DNA of 64,000 bases from Laetmonice hystrix. Its lineage: Eukaryota. The stretch spans positions 8,556,001-8,620,000 of the forward strand of contig OZ249442.1 in assembly GCA_965235115.1 (NCBI GenBank). The letters run 5' to 3'. Each line of letters opens with the position of its first letter. Within the stretch, counting starts at the first letter, position 1. Under the pieces are notes generated by a model, which worked only from the letters and a program-made list of their open reading frames with translations, ran no database searches and had not been told where the DNA came from. This document shows, one piece after another, positions 8,710-16,962 of this stretch. The translations under genes were made by a program, and so were the position numbers.

Positions 8710-9275
8710 ATGTAAACAGGGGCGCCGGCATGCAATTGGAGCTAGTGGCACTGGCCCATTGTGTAAACAGGGGTGGCCTCATGCAGGTGGAGCTAGTGGC
8801 ACTGGTCCATTGTGTAAACAGGGGTGGTGTCGTGCAGGTGGAGCTAGTGGCACTGGCCCATTGTGTAAACAGGGTTCGGTGACATGCAGGTGGAGCTAGT
8901 GGCACTGGTCCATTGTGTAAACAGGGTTCGGTGACATGCAGGTGGAGCTAGTGGCACTGGTCCATTGTGTAAACAGGGGTGGTGTCGTGCAGGTGGAGCT
9001 AGTGGCACTGGTCCATTGTGTAAACAGGGGTGGCCTCATGCAGGTGGAGCTCGTGGCACTGGTCCATTGTGTAAACAGGGGTGGTGTCGTACAGGTGGAG
9101 CTAGTGGCACTGGCCCATTGTGTAAACAGGGTTCGGTGACATGCAGGTGGAGCTAGTGGCACTGGTCCATTGTGTAAACAGGGGTGGTGTCGTACAGGTG
9201 GAGCTAGTGGCACTGGTCCATTGTGTAAACAGGGGTGGTGTCGTACAGGTGGAGCTAGTGGCACTGGTCCATTGT
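8710..9275. repeat. 50-51 bp minisatellite, about 11 copies
   Basis: Unit GTGTAAACAGGGGTGGTGTCGTGCAGGTGGAGCTAGTGGCACTGGTCCATT. Confidence 0.95.
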
Positions 9276-9646
9276 ACAGAAAGATTCAGAAAAAAGTTAG
9301 CCTGGAGAAAGTTTCTGTGAGACAGATTTTCATCTATATCTAGCCGAACTTTTGAACTCATAAGACTTTTGAAGGTGTTGGTGTTTGGGAAACGTTTTAT
9401 GCCCCTATCATGGGTGGATCCATGGAGGGCGTCTGGCCAATGAAAATCACCCTTGTGGCCCCCTTAAACTACCCCAGAATCAGTGAGTAATGAGTAAGTC
9501 TCCTATCATGGGTGGATCCAGGGGTACTTAGCACCTCGAGGGCATCTGGCCAATGAAAATCACCCGTGTGCCCCTAGACTACCCAGAGTGTATCTTCTTT
9601 GATTACAGATTTCAGGCCTGGTTCACAGATTTCATACCAACCAACA

Positions 9647-9682
9647 ATGGCGCAGATCGGAATCACAAAGGCTGAGTGGGAG
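9647..9682 (+). CDS. CARD-BTB-Kelch exon 1 (MAQIGITKAEWE)
   Basis: Kozak ATG, donor GAG|GTAACC, phase 0. Confidence 0.65.
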
Positions 9683-12600
9683 GTAACCTTTTACCGATAT
9701 TATTTATTCTTTTGTTCAACTTTTGGTGGAGGGAGGTAATTCTGAAGCCCCCTTACGTTCTGGCTGTGTCGACTGGTTTTCCTCTCTCTCCTTCCTTTCC
9801 GTTTCCAGGTTCGATATGCCACATTACGTCACCACCCTCTCCAATGCCACATTAGACAGCGTCTGATGTCTAGCAGAGTCGCCTTGGTGGAGAACCTGTG
9901 GATAAACGATGAATTCCTCAACCACTTACAAAAGGAAGAGGTCCTCAACATCTCCCTCTCAGGGGAAGTTAAGGTAACTTATATCTGAGTAGATCTACTG
10001 TCATGTCACTTTAGGCCTAGTGCTATTCCTCAAACATTATCAATGTCTTTAGCGTATTTGCCGGTTTTACTGGTAGGCCCAAGTGAAGAGATATTTTTAC
10101 CATTCCTTCTGTAGCCTACCGTAGGCTGTCTGTGCACCTGTTGATGTCTTTTGTAAATTCAAGGTTTAGGTGTGATGCTTGCTCAAATTACATGGGTATT
10201 TTGTATATTGGTCTGGGTAAGACTAAGCCAAAAATTGCTCGGGCAGACAGAAGGGCTAGTAATCTTCCAAAGTTCTCGCAGCGGGTCATTAGACTACATC
10301 TTATCTTAGCAAGAACTTTCAAGTATGCATATTGTTTCAGGCAAAGCCTGCCGGAAACGCCCGATCAAGCCTGTTCTTTGACCTGATTTCAAGGAGGTCA
10401 ATGTGGCACTACGGCAAGCTCATAGACTCCTTGATGGCTACTGGTAGAGAGCATGTCGCTTCCCTGCTGCCAGCTGCCGGTAAGTTTCTGCACTACAGAG
10501 CATTAGTCGGAATTGGTCACTTCTTAGCGTCTCTGAAGTTAAAATGGCAGCGTTAACAACAGGTATTTTTCCAACCCTCGCAGACTTTTGTAGGCCTTGC
10601 CAAACATCACAACTCCCGTAATTATCGGCCAATTGGCATTGTAAGGAAAATCACTGAAAAAACGCCTGGAACATGTTTAATAACTAAAGAAATTATTGCC
10701 CCTAAAGACGACAGAATGATTTAAACGCAGTTTGATCATGCTTTCTGAGGGCATGATTTGGGAGACCCCACATGGGAATGAATGGACAAATTGGGGCCTG
10801 AAAGTCGTTCCCACCACGTGTTCGCTTGGAGTGTCGAGAAACGCCGAGAACTAAGATCTAGGGACAGTTAAACATAGAGTGAAATATTCTTCCTGACCAT
10901 AATAAAAACTATTGCCCTTTGAAGAGAGTAGGAAGGAGTAGCTTAGTGGTGGACTGTACAAACGTGCCATGATATGTGTAGGCACGCAGACATACCTCTC
11001 TATCTACCTGTCGTTATCCATGAATACTATATTGTATTTTGTGGCACCACAATTAGATGATGGTGGTTGGAGGAAGTGGTCGAAGTTAGTTTCACAAACA
11101 TCCACGTAGCACAGATACGTGGATTTGGATATTTTCATTACCATTTCTCTCACTGGCCTTCCCCAGTGCTCCGCAACTGGGTTATCAAAGGGTTTGGTAT
11201 GTGCAGCAGCCATGTCTGGGTGATTGAGATTCGAACCGTTCCCCTTGCCATTTTTCTAAAAGAGTAGAGATTGCCTCCCGCCGGCGGGGTTTCTTCCTAA
11301 TTCCCCATCATGAGCTCCTTAGACTCGCGGTACAAAAATCTCATAACTGAGCAAGTTTTAAGATTTCTTTCTCCTATTGGTTCAATACTTCCGACATTGT
11401 GTAATATGGTAAACCCTAGACAGAGTATCCGTCTCTGTACTACCGTATACAGAGACGGACGCCACTTAATGCAAGTTCCTGGTGTGTTTGGTCAAATCAT
11501 CCAACCACCATTAAAAACCCCTCCCCTGCCCATATATCTGGACTGAATATTGATAAACATGCTTAAAGTAACTTAGCACTTATTTCCAAATTTGGAAAGC
11601 CCGACGAGACATAATAAGCACAAAGTCTGGAATCGACGAATTTCGCTCTCTGCCTAACGCGGTCATTTTGACCTCCCGGGTCAGGGAGTAGCCTGGTACC
11701 CTGCTTAACAGACGCGTCCGCTATGTTGCGACATACGTAGAGCAGGGGACCTTGCGAGGTCAGAGAGATGCATGCTGGGACATAAACAGGCCACGGAATT
11801 TGATGTTTTATCCTTAAAATACTTGTCAAACAACTAAAAGACGACGTTGCCCCTGATAAATGGATGCCGTTGAGTTGATCGGTACATGAATTTGCGCTGC
11901 CCCTGACACACCAATTTTTAACATTGAGTGGTCGTACACCTCACTGGCTAAGGCTTACTACGTATGCTAGGTAAACCCCTACATAGGCTTCCCAGCGCCA
12001 TCTATCGGATCCCGTCGATAATTCCACATTGTACTGTTCTTACAGTGATATTACCAGACGATTTCAGGATGTTTGAACAACTTTTACCAAAGATGGCAGA
12101 CCTTGGTGTTCTGTCTGGAGACGAGGTGTCTGAACTCCAGGTGAGTGAAGGGATATGTCGAGACGTAACTCCAATAGACTGCTGTGTCAGCCAGGGAGTT
12201 GGGCCTTGCAAACAGGAATGCTAGCTTTTCTTAGCCAATCAGCCAAATGAGGATTTAGCCAACCAAGGGCAAAATGGTTGTGCAGACATTCGCTATAGGC
12301 CACCAACCTGCAGACATTTTTAAAATAGAAATTTTTAGCAGGCAAGCATCAATGATATAAAATCTTATCAATCCTCCCTTACGATGTTCAATATTTTCAA
12401 AAACATGTACGTTGAGAAGGAAGTACGGTATTGGTGTGTGAAAATCATGTCGATTTTCTATGTATCGCGCATAAAAAGGTTGGAATTACTTCAATAGATT
12501 TGGGAAAGATTGTTCCTCTGAGATGCTGATGCTCAAAAAAGGCATCTCTGGCATTCCTGAAAAAGAATTTCGAGGAGGGGGGGGGGGGGGTGCTTTAATC

Positions 12601-15600
12601 TTTCAACGTGTTTTCCCCCCTCAACAGTACTTTATGTTTATTGTGGTTTCCGTCTATTTTCTTTATACAGGGAAGGATGGAAAGGATGGCTTTAATTGAT
12701 GAACCTTGCCACGTGGGGGCGCTGAGTAAGATGATGATATATACATAATGTTATGCCTTGGCCTACATACATTAAGAGTACACACATAGGGACAGGCATT
12801 AGGCCTACATTAGCAGCCTGCATTAGTACATGCATTAGCGTGGTCGGCTTACATTAGGTCCCATTATCATATAATGATATAGGCCTCCGGACTGTTACCC
12901 ATTCAATTGTCCAGGGACCTACGGCCCAGTATAGGCCATAACGAGATTTTTTATTGCAGGAGCATCAACCTTGGATCGCTTTACCCAGACAGATGGTCCA
13001 GACACCTCTGACCAACTGATCCAGACAGATGGTCCTGACACCTCAGTCCAACTAATCCATCCTACAGATGGACCTGATATCTCAGTCCAGCTGGTCCATA
13101 CAGATGGACCAGACACATTGGACAAGCTCGTCCATACAGATGAACCTGACACCTCAAACCAACTCCTCCATACAGATGGATCCGACACCTCGGACCAACT
13201 CCTCCAGACAGATGGACACGACACCTCAGACCAACACATCCATACAGATGGACCCGACACCTCGGACCCACTCGTCCAGACAGAGGGACCCGACACCTCA
13301 GACCAACTACCCCATACAGATGGACCTGACACCTTGGACCAAGTCATCCAGACAGATGGACACGACACCTCAGACCAGCTCGCCCAAACAGATGGACACG
13401 CCACCTTGGACCAACTCATCCAGACAGATGGACACGACACCTCAGACCAACATGTCCAAACGGAGGACCCAGCTATTGTGACACAAACCATCTTGCACTC
13501 AATGACCCTTGAACAGCTGGTAAAGAAAGACCTTCAGGACGCGACGTCAGACATCCGGGACATCATCGATCCAGACGCCATCTTGGACGTAGGTGTTTGT
13601 AAAACTATACTCAACGCGTCGGAAACGGAACGAGTCAAGGTGAGGACTCAATCTAATTAAAATTAGATCTTAGTTATTTCGCATGGGCTCCATACTAGGA
13701 TCTAACGGCATCCCGTATGGGGTCACCTCAGGCTGCCCTTTGACCCAGATTCAAGTGTGCCGTTGAAAATGCCTACGAGCGCACACCGAAGATTTCGTAG
13801 GCGGCTCGCTGATTGGCTGAATCCCGAGGTCAACCTGAGGTGACCCCTAATGGGATGTCCTTAGATCTAGGTATGGAGAGCAGACAGAACTGACACAGCC
13901 GAGAGAGACGCGGAATACCAAGATCTAACTTTAATTAGATTGGGTGAGGACTGGTATGAAAAACTTTACAACACTTGAGGGCGGAGGGTTTGTCTGATTA
14001 GGTGTTCCCCCCCCCCCATGTCCTAAGTCCCTCCAAAATTACAAGACCAGCACATTTCTATGCACGCACACCACAGCATTTTTTGAGGTCTCGGATTAAA
14101 AAATAACTCTGTCTGTAGGCCGGTGTATATTGAAATGTCTCTGTCATAGTAGGTTCCTTCACAGATATGATTGGACCTAAGTCATGTAAACCTATTCATG
14201 ATATTACTGTACCTAAGTCATGTAGACCTATCCATGATATGATTGGTTCTAAGTCATGTTGACCTATTCATGATATGATTGGTCCTAAGTCATGTAGACC
14301 TATCCATGATATGATTGGTTCTAAGTCATGTTGACCTATCCATGATATGATTGGTCCTAAGTCATGTTGACCTATCCATGATATGATTGGTTCTAAGTCA
14401 TGTTGACCTATTCATGATATGATTGGTCCAAAGTCATGTTGACCTATCCATGATATGATTGGTCCTAAGTCATGTTGACCTATCCATGATATGATTGGTC
14501 CTAAGTCATGTTGATCTATCCATGATATGATTGGTCCTAAGTCATGTTGACCTATCCATGATATGATTGGTTCTAAGTCATGTTGACCTATCCATGATAT
14601 GATTGGTCCTAAGTCATGTAGACCAATCAATGATATGATTGGTCCTAAGTTATATGAACCAATTACTCTTTTTCCAGCGAGAGCCAGACAGGTCCTTACG
14701 GGAGAGGAACCTCCGGCTGCTTGAGTTCGTCCAGCAGAAACCACTCGACCAGTTGTACGGCTTCCTGGAGGTGCTCCGGTCGAGCGGACAGATGCAGGTC
14801 CTCCAACGGCTTGGATACTCAGTCAGAAGTAAGTCCAAGCTGGACCACATGGTTGTATAGGTGTAACGGGGTCTCTATATCCATTCATTTTACACTCAGT
14901 GAGCAGTCAGTCCAAGCTGGACCACATGGTTGTATAGGTGTAACGGGGTCTCTATATCCATTCATTTTACACTCAGTGAGCAGTCAGTCCAAGCTGGACC
15001 ACATGGTTGTATAGGTGTAACGAGGTCTCTATATCCATTCATTTTACACTCAGTCAGCAGTAAGTCCAAGCTGGACCACATGGTTGTATAGGTGTAACGG
15101 AGTCTCTATATCCATTCATTTTACACTCAGTGAGCAGTCAGTCCAAGCTGGACCACATGGTTGTATAGGTGTAACGAGGTCTCTATATCCATTCATTTTA
15201 CACTCAGTGAGAAGTCAGTCCAAGCTTTTGTACCACAGACCCCAAATAACCAGACGATATCATATTCCAAATATTATGACATTGGGGTAGAAATTATAGA
15301 AGTTACAGTCAAGAAAAGGATGTTCCAAATTTTTTTGGCCCATCCGATATATTGTATGCGGCCATAATGGATACAAAATCGTTATTTTGATATTTCACTT
15401 AGACACAACCTTTTGTCTGCATTAGACACAGTCACTATAGTAAGGCGCTTGTAAAAACAATTCCTGATCCTTTTCATCATTTTGTTATTTGGACAGAATT
15501 GGCCATACGCACAGCTCAGAGTTGCACAGCCCGGGGACATGTGACAACAACTACGGAATACTACAAGGCTCAGCGATCTCAGTACGAAGGTTTCGATAAA

Positions 15601-16962
15601 GAACTGGTTGCGGAAGGCGTCAAGTTCCCCGTCCATTCTCAATTCATCGAGTCCTACTCACCGGTCATCAAAGATCAACTGTCAAAGGTTAAGGGCCACA
15701 GAGTGGGACTTAAGAACACGTCGGCGGTAGGACTTGGTATAATGTTGGATGTATTGTACACCGGTGTACTCAACATGACACCTGAAGATGTTCGTACCGT
15801 CCGCCAGGTGGCCACAATGTTCACTGTTGAAGGATTCGAAGAAACGTTTCGAGTGGCAGCGAGACAAGCTCGGGTTGAACAGATAAACGAGCTGATTGCA
15901 GAACTTAAACTGACTGATCGTGTCATGTTACCTAAGGGACCCCTTGACGTCGGGGAGGTGTTGGTGGAGAGGGCAGTGTCTAAACTAGGTCTCGGTAAGC
16001 GGACAGATGTGGTCCTGGCGACCCGCTGTGTGGCTGTGGTCGGGGGTTGTGTTGGGGTAGGTAATAATAGTGGTCCAATCCCCGCCATGATGGTCGCCCC
16101 ACTGTCCCCAGACGGCCGGCTTCAGCCGTGGGTCACTTTAACCACACCCCTACAAGTCAGAACTGTAAGTTCTCAAGCTGTGTCCTTTGGCCCGTACCTG
16201 ATTATCATAGGTGGGGAAGATAAACTCAATAGTTGCCAGGTAAGAAAGGGTGTGTGGCTGTTATCGTTCCTGACGTCCACGTGGCACCAACTGCCACCCA
16301 TGACCACTGCCCGGAAATGGTTCAGTGTTTCCACCTTGCCGAGTGGGCCGGCTGTGCTGGCCGTCGGGGGATATGACGGATCCCTACCCCTCTCGTCATG
16401 TGAGCGGTTGGACCTGGTGTCCCTCACATGGACGCCGGTGGCCGCCATGCCTCACCTACGGGCCGGCCATGCTGCCGCTGTGTGTGGAGAGATGGTGTAC
16501 GTCACCGGTGGCTGGGTGCGGGGTGAGAGTAGCAGCACCAGTGTGTGTACGTATGACGAGGTGCGGGGGGAGTGGACCACAGCTCCGTCCATGATAAACC
16601 GCCGTGTGCACCACACAGCGGGGTCCGTGCCGGGTCGGGTGGTGGTGTGTGGGGGGAGGGACGCGGTGGAGGTGCTGCCCGTGGAGGTGTTTGACACGGT
16701 CACACAGCAGTGGTCAGAGCTGACCACACTGTCACGGGGTTACACACTGGCAGGGTCCGTGGTCGTGGGTAACACGCTCTATGTGGTCGGAGGGAGTTAC
16801 TGGAAGGAAGGCAGGACGTTTGACACCACACGTGACGTGACAGTGGTTGACATGGTGACGGGTCAGGTCACTGTGACTGATGACGTCACACTCCCGGCTG
16901 TAGCCAATTTTTCCACAGTCTGTGTCACAGATGTACCGACGTCACAGTTCCTCGGTATCTAA
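9647..16962 (+). CDS. CARD-CARD-BTB-Kelch protein of about 928 aa (8 coding exons)
   Basis: Exons 9647-9682, 9809-9973, 10341-10479, 12046-12140, 12671-12725, 12960-13639, 14678-14828, 15497-16962. All are GT-AG with matching phases (0,0,1,0,1,0,1). Total 2787 nt = 929 codons with no internal stop. Kozak context acaATGG. Domain calls are motif recognition by eye. Confidence 0.75.
9809..9973 (+). CDS. Exon 2: CARD1 N-half (..RQRLMSSRVALVENLWINDEFLNHLQKEEVLNISLSGEVK)
   Basis: Long pyrimidine tract + CAG acceptor, donor AAG|GTAACT, CARD helix 1-3 pattern. Confidence 0.8.
10341..10479 (+). CDS. Exon 3: CARD1 C-half (..SSLFFDLISRRSMWHYGKLIDSLMATGREHVASLL)
   Basis: TTTCAG acceptor, donor G|GTAAGT phase 1, CARD helix 4-6 pattern. 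Confidence 0.8.
12046..12140 (+). CDS. Exon 4 (ILPDDFRMFEQLLPKMADLGVLSGDEVSELQ)
   Basis: TTCTTACAG acceptor phase 1, donor CAG|GTGAGT. Confidence 0.65.
12671..12725 (+). CDS. Exon 5 (GRMERMALIDEPCHVGAL)
   Basis: TTTATACAG acceptor, donor A|GTAAGA, phases 0/1 fit both neighbours. Confidence 0.6.
12960..13639 (+). CDS. Exon 6: 14 x 12-aa repeats (SDQLIQTDGPDT) plus CARD2 N-half
   Basis: TTTTATTGCAG acceptor, ORF 12971-13660, donor AAG|GTGAGG. Confidence 0.8.
13649..13942. mobile_element. Mutator-like (MULE) MITE, 294 bp, 10-bp TSD GGTGAGGACT
   Basis: TIR CAATCTAATTAAAATTAGATCTT / AAGATCTAACTTTAATTAGATTG, further internal inverted arms, identical 10-mers at 13639-13648 and 13943-13952. Confidence 0.85.
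14165..14652. repeat. 35-bp minisatellite, about 14 copies, ending about 25 nt before the exon-7 acceptor
   Basis: Unit CATGATATGATTGGTCCTAAGTCATGTTGACCTAT(C). Confidence 0.95.
14678..14828 (+). CDS. Exon 7: CARD2 C-half (REPDRSLRERNLRLLEFVQQKPLDQLYGFLEVLRSSGQMQVLQRL)
   Basis: CTTTTTCCAG acceptor, donor A|GTAAGT phase 1, CARD helix 4-6 pattern. Confidence 0.8.
14817..15225 (+). repeat. 77-bp tandem repeat (about 5.3 units) containing the exon-7 end and donor
   Basis: TCCAAGCT recurs at 14834, 14911, 14988, 15065, 15142, 15219. Confidence 0.95.
15497..16962 (+). CDS. Exon 8: intronless BTB/POZ plus six Kelch repeats
   Basis: ORF 15499-16962. BTB-like LVAEGVKFPVH...IMLDVLYTGVLNMTPEDVRTV. Six Kelch GG motifs (VVGG, IIGG, AVGG, VTGG, VCGG, VVGG) with W-x-x-x-x-x-M linkers. 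GACAG acceptor, phase 1. Confidence 0.92.

Follow-up and report, generated by a model that had tools for sequence, protein, structure and literature searches.

Animal cells wire their cell-death and inflammatory signalling through death-fold domains, and no class of Cul3 substrate adaptors is larger than that of the BTB-Kelch proteins. We know of no polypeptide in which a CARD, a member of the death fold, and a BTB-Kelch unit have been described together. In this work, we analysed such a combination in a window of 64,000 nucleotides (the whole stretch under analysis) from Laetmonice hystrix. Eight exons make up a single transcribed gene here, and it encodes a 928-aa cytosolic protein, with no hint of a signal peptide or transmembrane segment in any domain search of the gene product. 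From its N-terminus, the predicted protein carries CARD1, a short segment that may be a relic half-CARD, some 13 acidic repeats of 12 aa, CARD2 and the BTB domain; a two-helix linker then leads to a Kelch propeller of six blades. Tentatively, at a little under an even chance, we take the members of the family of about 24 copies to which it belongs to be sensors or adaptors acting inside the cell, in which a variable Kelch face would give rise to CARD output.

KLHL/KBTBD/KEAP1 proteins share with this family a long-form BTB domain followed by a six-bladed Kelch (in Foldseek, the modelled propeller matches the Kelch domains of KEAP1 and KLHL3 at TM 0.88-0.91). The present family differs from them in having neither BACK/3-box nor phi-x-E, in about 440 extra N-terminal residues made up of two CARDs and a repeat linker, in its tandem expansion and in its diversifying binding face. 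In Plasmodium falciparum Kelch13, the BTB is almost directly joined to a six-bladed Kelch, and there is no BACK domain. The Kelch13 structure (PDB 4yy8) aligns to our exon 8 model over 457 columns (Foldseek rank 49), but identity is 17%, and Kelch13 has an N-terminal coiled coil, no CARDs and a single-copy gene.

With the 2CARD arrangement of RIG-I/MDA5 and with NOD2, the family would have in common two N-terminal CARDs, a C-terminal ligand recognition (which we infer here) and, by analogy, a logic of CARD exposure or clustering. Unlike them, it carries no NACHT/NB-ARC ATPase or DExD/H helicase in Pfam scans of all exons, which gave only BTB and Kelch families; its CARDs lie about 250 residues apart instead of forming a compact pair, and the putative sensor is the Kelch domain. 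Fast-evolving recognition domains are found in MATH-BTB, F-box and TRIM-SPRY families. Nematode and plant MATH-BTB, F-box and TRIM5-like TRIM-SPRY proteins resemble the present family in joining an oligomerisation module to positively selected recognition loops and in their tandem arrays, but here the recognition fold is Kelch, signalling would be through CARD, there is no RING domain and the link to a ligase is undemonstrated.

Lineage-specific shuffling of death-fold domains in invertebrate genomes has been reported for amphioxus (PMC2575513), in a paper that does not mention BTB or Kelch. The L. hystrix genome is likewise rich in CARD and Death domains, in novel combinations with other modules: six-frame matches amount to at least 92 CARD sites, some of them in large arrays of ORFs that encode a CARD alone, and at least 38 Death domains. 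A relative with CARD + BTB + Kelch architecture was found neither in protein searches nor in the literature searched, where the terms CARD-BTB and CARD-Kelch were also not found. The CARD-CARD-BTB-Kelch gene is lineage-restricted, in agreement with a sequence-only reading of this DNA that had proposed a lineage-specific shuffled protein and knew of no characterised protein of this architecture.

The eight GT-AG exons (+ strand, 9647-16962; Table 1) total 2787 nt and hold 928 codons, uninterrupted by any stop, before a closing TAA; every acceptor is AG, every donor is GT and the phases agree. The ATG at 9647 is the first one downstream of an in-frame stop at 9575. In exon 6, Tandem Repeats Finder detected an acidic tandem repeat with a unit of 36 nt (12 aa), present in about 13 copies at 12985-13451. 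Taken by itself, the last exon holds a 487-aa ORF that begins at a TTG codon, 2 nt past the AG at 15495-15496, and whose first in-frame ATG is codon 82, within the BTB domain. The sequence-only reading had described this ORF as lacking an ATG of its own, starting 2 nt past an acceptor and joined in phase by seven upstream exons, and all of this holds.

Table 1. Exons and domains of the CARD-CARD-BTB-Kelch gene, with positions in the window
Feature	Position	Strand	Content or basis
Exon 1, coding part	9647..9682	+	Start codon and 12 codons; the exon itself reaches upstream of 9640
Exon 2	9809..9973	+	CARD1, first half
Exon 3	10341..10479	+	CARD1, second half
CARD1, entire	aa 30-109 = 9860-9973 + 10341-10466	+	Predicted with custom CARD HMM, hhalign
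Exon 4	12046..12140	+	31 codons; weak likeness to CARD helices 2-3
Exon 5	12671..12725	+	55 nt linker exon; the reading frame depends on it; conserved in C7 paralogues
Exon 6	12960..13639	+	Acidic tandem repeats, then CARD2 first half from about 13544
Exon 7	14678..14828	+	CARD2, second half
CARD2, entire	aa 359-434 = 13544-13639 + 14678-14809	+	Predicted with custom CARD HMM, hhalign
Exon 8	15497..16962	+	BTB, two-helix linker, six-bladed Kelch propeller, stop codon
BTB domain in exon 8	about 15520-15813	+	Pfam, AlphaFold2, Foldseek
Two-helix linker without BACK domain, exon 8	about 15814-16017	+	AlphaFold2 model
Six-bladed Kelch propeller, exon 8	about 16018-16938	+	Pfam Kelch_1, AlphaFold2, Foldseek

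Judged by sequence profiles, both N-terminal segments are CARDs. Each is split by an intron conserved in every copy, with no read-through copies, and Pfam CARD (PF00619; gathering threshold 23.9 bits) gave no match in the single exons of this gene, each of which holds only half a domain. For half-domain exons of the paralogues, CARD was the top Pfam match at 14.4-17.8 bits, below the threshold, and each exon aligned with the half of the model expected for it: positions 1-39 (17.8 bits) for a counterpart of exon 2 (L015:4568-4732), 12-40 (17.4 bits) for one of exon 6 (L005:3328-3510) and 42-82 (14.6 bits) for one of exon 7 (L008:1802-1951). A six-frame genome search for CARD also matched an exon-2 homologue (C29:6642712-6642831). 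Scored with a custom HMM built from 25 CARDs that this genome encodes without introns, all above the Pfam cut-off, the spliced segments reached 28.1 bits (CARD1) and 25.9 bits (CARD2), with paralogues at 12-38 bits and a maximum of 8 bits in 1000 shuffles. In hhalign, the family profile matched the CARD profile with a probability of 96.8% over 78/80 columns for CARD1 and 97.4% over 73/80 for CARD2, and the Death-domain profile gave at most 10 bits and 55-64% in hhalign. CARD clusters were also the nearest in language-model features for exon 3 (0.89, 178 shared features) and exon 7 (0.90, 191 shared features). The two upstream CARD segments of the sequence-only reading were recovered by both profile methods. 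Exon 4, which is kept in the paralogues, aligned with positions 17-39 of the CARD profile at 47% probability in hhalign and gave no match in the Pfam scan; it may be a relic half-CARD.

In the Pfam scan, exon 8 matched BTB with 38.3 bits (cut-off 20.5) and Kelch_1 with 119.8 bits in 5 stretches. Its AlphaFold2 model has six Kelch blades, with a mean pLDDT of 81.6 and about 90 in the BTB core, and a phmmer search against PDB matched the Kelch domains of KLHL2, KLHL20, KLHL17, KLHL3, KLHL12 and KEAP1. One reading of such a protein is a Cullin-3 adaptor coupled to CARD assemblies, in which the BTB would recruit Cul3-Rbx1, the variable Kelch would pick ubiquitination substrates and the CARDs would dock the ligase on filaments or be themselves regulated. 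Consistent with it, the propeller is of the KLHL/KEAP1 type and the BTB core is structurally nearest, in Foldseek, to Cul3-binding BTB-Kelch proteins, namely KBTBD2 (a structure solved with Cul3), KEAP1 and KLHL26. Expanded families of ubiquitin-ligase adaptors with fast-evolving substrate-binding domains also occur elsewhere, among them MATH-BTB and F-box proteins of nematodes and plants, reportedly treated by Thomas in 2006, a study cited in PMC4334554 and PMC8120010. The same BTB core, however, matches non-Cul3 ZBTB/BCL6 BTB domains equally well, BCL6 being among its nearest structures too. Furthermore, the Pfam scan of exon 8 gave no PF07707 (BACK) match, which a fish KEAP1 (P0003) has; about 110 KEAP1 residues, including the 3-box, have no counterpart in the family, and the model shows just two low-confidence helices, 113-140 and 152-162, between the BTB and blade 1. 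In the alignment, the family also lacks phi-x-E in the BTB alpha3-beta4 loop, where the fish KEAP1 has F-K-E, the loop being 4 residues shorter than in KEAP1, with the consensus S-K-V-K-C-S-R and no acidic residue. Given the missing BACK/3-box and the short loop without the phi-x-E glutamate, Cul3 recruitment is only a possibility, and we consider the adaptor reading unlikely, though far from negligible. The assignment of the gene to the KLHL/KEAP1-type Cullin-3 adaptors, made from sequence, is therefore sustained by the BTB core and the KEAP1-like propeller and fails on BACK/3-box and phi-x-E.

About 24 copies of the last exon are present in the genome (22 intact and 2 disrupted), with a half-CARD2 exon 0.2-3 kb upstream, and none of the 22 intact last exons, all of which were fetched, contains a stop codon. 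At 12 paralogous loci, all exons are found in the same order, with identity down to 44% and conserved CAG/GT splice sites. This family of about 24 paralogues, together with its diversifying Kelch binding face, had been overlooked in the earlier reading.

Among paralogues, exon dN/dS is below 1; deeper comparisons gave 0.12-0.3 for CARD1 and about 0.5 for CARD2. The Kelch 2-3 and 4-1 loops are the BC and DA loops, which make up the substrate-binding face in KEAP1 and KLHL proteins. We treated these as top loops, the site classes being set by the Kelch motif together with the model's DSSP string and not from coordinates, and summed NG86 counts over 7 independent sister pairs. The resulting dN/dS was 0.62 for the BTB, 0.42 for Kelch strands and 0.67 for bottom loops; for the top loops it was 1.68 (bootstrap CI 1.10-2.62; 229 nonsynonymous vs 45 synonymous changes), a comparison among paralogues that gene conversion can distort and in which dS is raised in the top loops too (0.080 vs 0.042). 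The CARDs, the BTB and the Kelch strands are under purifying selection, and the top-loop excess beside constrained strands and bottom loops fits diversifying selection, not general relaxation.

Relaxation is part of another reading, in which the proteins would be regulators or decoys of CARD signalling, whose CARDs cap or sequester assemblies, as CARD-only inhibitors do, and whose BTB-Kelch part anchors them to the cytoskeleton or a scaffold, loop variation then reflecting relaxed constraint. Many Kelch proteins do bind actin or scaffolds, dN/dS over the entire Kelch domain is near 1 between close paralogues, and the long repeat linker parts the two CARDs, unlike in the packed RIG-I-type 2CARD unit. 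Nevertheless, the nonsynonymous excess is limited to the loops of one face and open frames are kept in 22/22 full-length copies, and we regard this possibility as quite improbable.

Transcript evidence came from run X1, whose cDNA nature was deduced from its behaviour, the run not being on record as RNA. X1 contigs connect exons 1-2-3, 4-5-6 and 6-7-8 precisely at the modelled splice sites. One has 9807-9971 spliced to 10339-10479, another joins 13511-13637, 14676-14828 and 15497-15639 with no mismatches, and exon 6 is covered at 12960-13232 and 13204-13373. Contig record 1 has 147 nt 5' of exon 2, about 41 of them placed in 9640-9680 by depth arithmetic, which also assigns about 82 nt of record 3 to exon 4 and about 58 nt to the exon 5 bin. 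X1 depth is zero in unique intron bins, and 77% of the words sampled from exon 8 are present in the run. The junction of CARD2 exon 7 with exon 8 (14828/15497), named in the sequence-only reading, is seen in X1 together with all others except 10479/12046, which no X1 contig crosses. Because of this gap, the linkage of CARD1 to the rest relies on phase agreement, similar contig depth (21 vs 18) and conserved collinearity. It is very improbable that what was merged by eye into one model is a pseudogene or at least two distinct genes: no single contig covers all exons, record 1 ends exactly at the exon-3 donor, and exons 4 and 5 add up to 150 nt, so that isoforms skipping both would stay in frame, but spliced contigs tie CARD2 to the BTB-Kelch exon and link the exons on either side of the gap, exon order and phases are kept in the 12 paralogous loci, and both CARDs are under purifying selection. 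Intron-skipping contigs, conserved exon order and splice sites and dN/dS below 1 together make the gene model more than a chance arrangement.

We return to intracellular sensors or adaptors with CARD output. The presence of about 24 copies with a diversifying propeller binding face suggests a family of immune sensors or adaptors inside the cell that has so far gone undescribed, and the abundance of potential CARD partners in the genome was also counted in its favour. Each copy would use its variable Kelch face to bind a target of its own, be it a protein of a pathogen or a host protein that has been modified, and its BTB domain would keep it in dimeric or oligomeric form. Target binding would then gather the CARDs, and these would nucleate homotypic assemblies with CARD proteins further downstream, leading to immune signalling by caspases or otherwise; the BTB may also, or instead, recruit a Cullin-3 ligase, an output that the model does not need. 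Two roles had been suggested from the sequence, bringing a Cul3 ligase to CARD filaments or sensing Kelch ligands for a CARD pathway; the paralogues and the diversifying face favour the second, and the case for Cul3 is weak.

Conserved signalling modules combined with one diversifying propeller face are the signature of a host-pathogen interface. The family may even represent an intracellular class of innate immune receptor that has gone unrecognised, an idea that we hold possible but on balance somewhat unlikely, with Kelch as the sensor in place of LRR/WD40, BTB oligomerisation in place of NACHT and a tandem-CARD output, possibly with ubiquitin-ligase recruitment in addition. If true, it would be an animal analogue of the 'sensor plus death-fold' receptor made of wholly different parts. 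If confirmed, the family would provide one binding face in many naturally occurring versions, a tractable system for studying the nucleation or switching-off of CARD assemblies and any direct coupling of these to ubiquitination, and would constitute a new receptor architecture for invertebrate innate immunity.

The gene lies on the forward strand of the window, which corresponds to C7:8556001-8620000 of an assembly made up of 35 contigs (627 Mb) and is eukaryotic DNA. Reading positions 9600-15700 for candidate exons, we assembled eight exons (see table) totalling 2787 nt, that is, 928 codons and a TAA. The frame is free of internal stops, each exon is flanked by an AG acceptor and a GT donor, and all phases match, just as the sequence-only reading had claimed. 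An in-frame stop is present upstream of the start ATG, at 9575, and no earlier ATG lies between them. The same reading held that the 487-aa Kelch ORF of the last exon lacks a start of its own, and indeed it begins with TTG, 2 nt past the acceptor, and has no in-frame ATG before codon 82. Pfam returned nothing above threshold for the remaining long ORFs of the window, and the minisatellite upstream of the gene yields spurious ORFs on both strands.

Features of the CARD-CARD-BTB-Kelch locus (positions in the window)
Feature	Positions	Remarks
Minisatellite	8711-9275	51-nt units, 11 copies; ~400 nt upstream of start codon
Exon 1	9647-9682	start ATG at 9647
Exon 2	9809-9973	putative CARD1, first half
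Exon 3	10341-10479	putative CARD1, second half
Isolated X1 contig	10756-10940	intron 3, single-copy DNA; depth 7.7
High-copy repeat	11240-12039	intron 3; DNA-run depths to tens of thousands, several internal-deletion joints
Exon 4	12046-12140	possible relic CARD
Exon 5	12671-12725	
Exon 6	12960-13639	~13 copies of an acidic 12-aa repeat; putative CARD2, first half, at its end
Foldback or MITE-like element	13640-13953	directly 3' of exon-6 donor; inverted terminal repeats
Minisatellite	14164-14650	intron 6; 36-nt units, 13.5 copies
Exon 7	14678-14828	putative CARD2, second half
Tandem array	14817-15226	77-nt units, 5.3 copies; begins within final 12 nt of exon 7
Exon 8	15497-16962	BTB, two-helix linker, Kelch propeller, stop

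Four sequencing runs from one sample were mapped on positions 9640-15639. Runs X2-X4 are genomic-DNA-like, with all bins covered at ~40-60x. Run X1 (59 million letters) leaves the unique bins of the introns (10040-10239, 12240-12639, 14040-14639 and 14840-15439) without any coverage, and its contigs skip introns: record 1 links 9807-9971 with 10339-10479, and record 5 joins 13511-13637, 14676-14828 and 15497-15639 with 0 mismatches, the 2-nt offsets in the joins being the AG common to exon end and intron end. Record 3 (413 nt, depth 18.3) has 273 nt on 12960-13232, and bin depths of 5.31 (12640-12839) and 7.5 (12040-12239) correspond to 58 and 82 nt more; since these sum to 413, depth arithmetic indicates that it spans exons 4, 5 and 6. 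By the same arithmetic, record 1 (depth 21.4) has ~41 nt in 9640-9680, which is exon 1, and the contig extends upstream. Exons 1-2-3, 4-5-6 and 6-7-8 are thus joined in RNA-like contigs matching the locus exactly; the closest exon of a paralogue has 92% identity. From this behaviour we infer that X1 is cDNA, though not recorded as RNA.

Most of the splicing proposed from the sequence, including the 14828|15497 junction, was therefore recovered; only 10479|12046 was crossed by no X1 contig, and record 1 stops exactly at that donor. Alternative splicing is a possible cause of this end; with 150 nt in exons 4 and 5 together, skipping both would preserve the frame. The isolated, low-depth X1 contig of intron 3 could come from pre-mRNA, from an exon used alternatively or from antisense transcription.

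The foldback or MITE-like element that follows exon 6 carries the same ~10-nt string, GGTGAGGACT, at each end, and the upstream copy provides the GT donor used in the transcript. Its depths in the DNA runs reach tens of thousands and it shows many internal-deletion joints, indicating a very high-copy family. Because the 77-nt array starts in exon 7, it carries repeats of the end of that exon, and of GTAAGT sites resembling donors, on into the intron; the first donor (14828) is the sole one used by the X1 contig.

The two N-terminal segments said to bear CARD hallmarks are each split by a conserved phase-0 intron near model position 41/42, the same position as in many CARDs of this genome. Pfam found no CARD in the window's own CARD-half exons (only Dredd_N, at E=0.11), the half domains being too short, and searching the whole genome in six frames with the Pfam CARD and Death models placed nothing inside the window. 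Reading through the CARD introns of 12 paralogues met stops in all, so no contiguous CARD was available for folding or scanning. We therefore built a custom HMM from 25 CARDs of this genome that lack introns and exceed the Pfam threshold. On the spliced segments it gave 28.1 bits for CARD1 (aa 30-109) and 25.9 bits for CARD2 (aa 359-434), against 12-38 bits in 12 paralogues, at most 8 bits in shuffles (1000 per segment) and at most 10 bits for a Death-domain HMM built likewise. When the family profiles were compared with the CARD profile in hhalign, the probability was 96.8% for CARD1 (78/80 columns) and 97.4% for CARD2 (73 columns); with the Death profile it was 55-64%. Pfam CARD was the top match of several paralogue half-exons (14.4-17.8 bits, below the Pfam threshold), always on the correct half of the model. 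Language-model features placed exons 3 (0.89) and 7 (0.90) nearest CARD clusters, and exon 2 had no meaningful match in that search. From these profile comparisons we conclude that both segments are predicted CARDs. Exon 4 shows a weak likeness to CARD helices 2-3 (hhalign probability 47%) and may be a CARD relic.

Exon 8 was read as BTB-Kelch, an assignment that is borne out. Pfam detected a BTB domain (38.3 bits) and Kelch_1 in five stretches (119.8 bits), and no BACK domain. An AlphaFold2 model based on the paralogue alignment (mean pLDDT 81.6) has its BTB core at residues 8-105, followed by two helices of low confidence and then by a six-bladed propeller at 174-480, which Foldseek matched to the Kelch domains of KEAP1 and KLHL3 with TM 0.88-0.91; phmmer against PDB led to the same KLHL/KEAP1 assignment. 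The P. falciparum K13 protein, also a BTB-Kelch protein devoid of BACK, aligns with the model over 457 columns in Foldseek. Modelled separately, the BTB-linker portion was nearest KBTBD2 (in a Cul3 complex), KEAP1 and KLHL26, and also BCL6/ZBTB BTB domains. A homodimer prediction with two copies of this fragment scored 0.01, which speaks neither for nor against dimerisation.

Searched in six frames with exon 8, the genome yielded 22 intact and two disrupted copies of it, with 51-85% identity: C7 has three, C29 a tandem cluster, C20 and C21 one each and C1 two. The copies are preceded on the same strand, at a distance of 0.2-3 kb, by a half-CARD2 exon, and tblastn of the 928-aa model against 12 loci recovered every exon in the same order, down to 44% identity, with conserved CAG/GT splice sites; the last exon is open in all 22 intact copies. 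The CARD2 exon pair is duplicated in L004 (C29:7471800-7481799) and L012 (C29:7676200-7686199), two loci that could encode three CARDs. In the tandem cluster, the members at C29:7338722-7340174 and C29:7502715-7508629 have the last exon broken into two pieces and are probably pseudogenes.

Selection differs along the protein. NG86 dN/dS was 0.12-0.3 for CARD1 and ~0.5 for CARD2 (deeper comparisons), ~0.3-0.5 for BTB and 0.8-1.4 for the whole Kelch region (close copies). In KEAP1/KLHL proteins the substrate-binding face is formed by the 2-3 (BC) and 4-1 (DA) loops. When the propeller was divided by Kelch motif and model strands, and changes were summed over seven independent sister pairs, dN/dS was 0.42 in the Kelch strands, 0.62 in BTB, 0.67 in the bottom (1-2 and 3-4) loops and 1.68 in the top (2-3 and 4-1) loops (bootstrap CI 1.10-2.62; 229 nonsynonymous and 45 synonymous changes), loop classes being set by motif and secondary structure instead of coordinates, gene conversion being a possible bias of the counts and dS being also raised in the top loops.

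Based on our data, the anatomy is solid: an expressed gene with CARD, putative relic, repeat, CARD, BTB and Kelch parts, in a diversifying family of ~24 members. Its function can be proposed only tentatively, the leading candidate being an intracellular sensor or adaptor, in which targets would bind to the variable face of the propeller and the CARDs would relay the signal through homotypic assembly. The role as a Cul3 adaptor favored by the sequence-only reading ranks second and seems rather unlikely. The BTB domain and the KLHL/KEAP1-like Kelch propeller agree with it, but two sequence features that reportedly (Canning et al. 2013) define Cul3-binding BTB-Kelch adaptors are missing from the family: in alignment with fish KEAP1 (P0003), ~110 residues including the BACK/3-box region have no counterpart, and the alpha3-beta4 loop, which holds the phi-x-E site of KEAP1, is four residues shorter and devoid of an acidic residue in all copies. 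Cul3 binding by the window protein, while possible, is thus not to be assumed.

No protein combining CARD with BTB-Kelch was retrieved by word-based, length-limited searches with exon 8, a paralogue frame (609 aa, widening the length window to 1066 aa) or its BTB region, the last of which had no match at all. An exhaustive search of representative proteins with exon 8 likewise returned no such protein and no self match, its matches being dominated by giant multi-Kelch proteins. In the collections searched, the closest relatives of the propeller were Kelch-only proteins of 38-40% identity, none exceeding 40%. The literature searched contained neither CARD-BTB or CARD-Kelch terms nor a description of this architecture, and a paper on domain shuffling in amphioxus (PMC2575513) mentions neither BTB nor Kelch. 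The lack of a described counterpart in these searches agrees with the sequence-only reading but is a weak negative result, the genome and its close relatives being seemingly missing from the protein collections.

Other CARD genes abound in this genome. Large arrays of ~97-128-aa ORFs, with one full CARD each, occupy C19:16.9-20.1 Mb (at least 25 Pfam matches) and C29:2.7-6.1 Mb, the latter sharing its contig with the CARD-BTB-Kelch cluster, and their products are candidate CARD-only partners or regulators. Near-identical copies of one CARD-containing ORF are dispersed on C5, C8, C11, C12 and C3 (e.g., loci L029, L030, L032 and L045-L049), which looks like a mobile-element-borne sequence or a very recent dispersed duplication. 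The lineage-specific shuffling of death folds is a known phenomenon of invertebrates, and the gene described here belongs to it, with a novel domain architecture.
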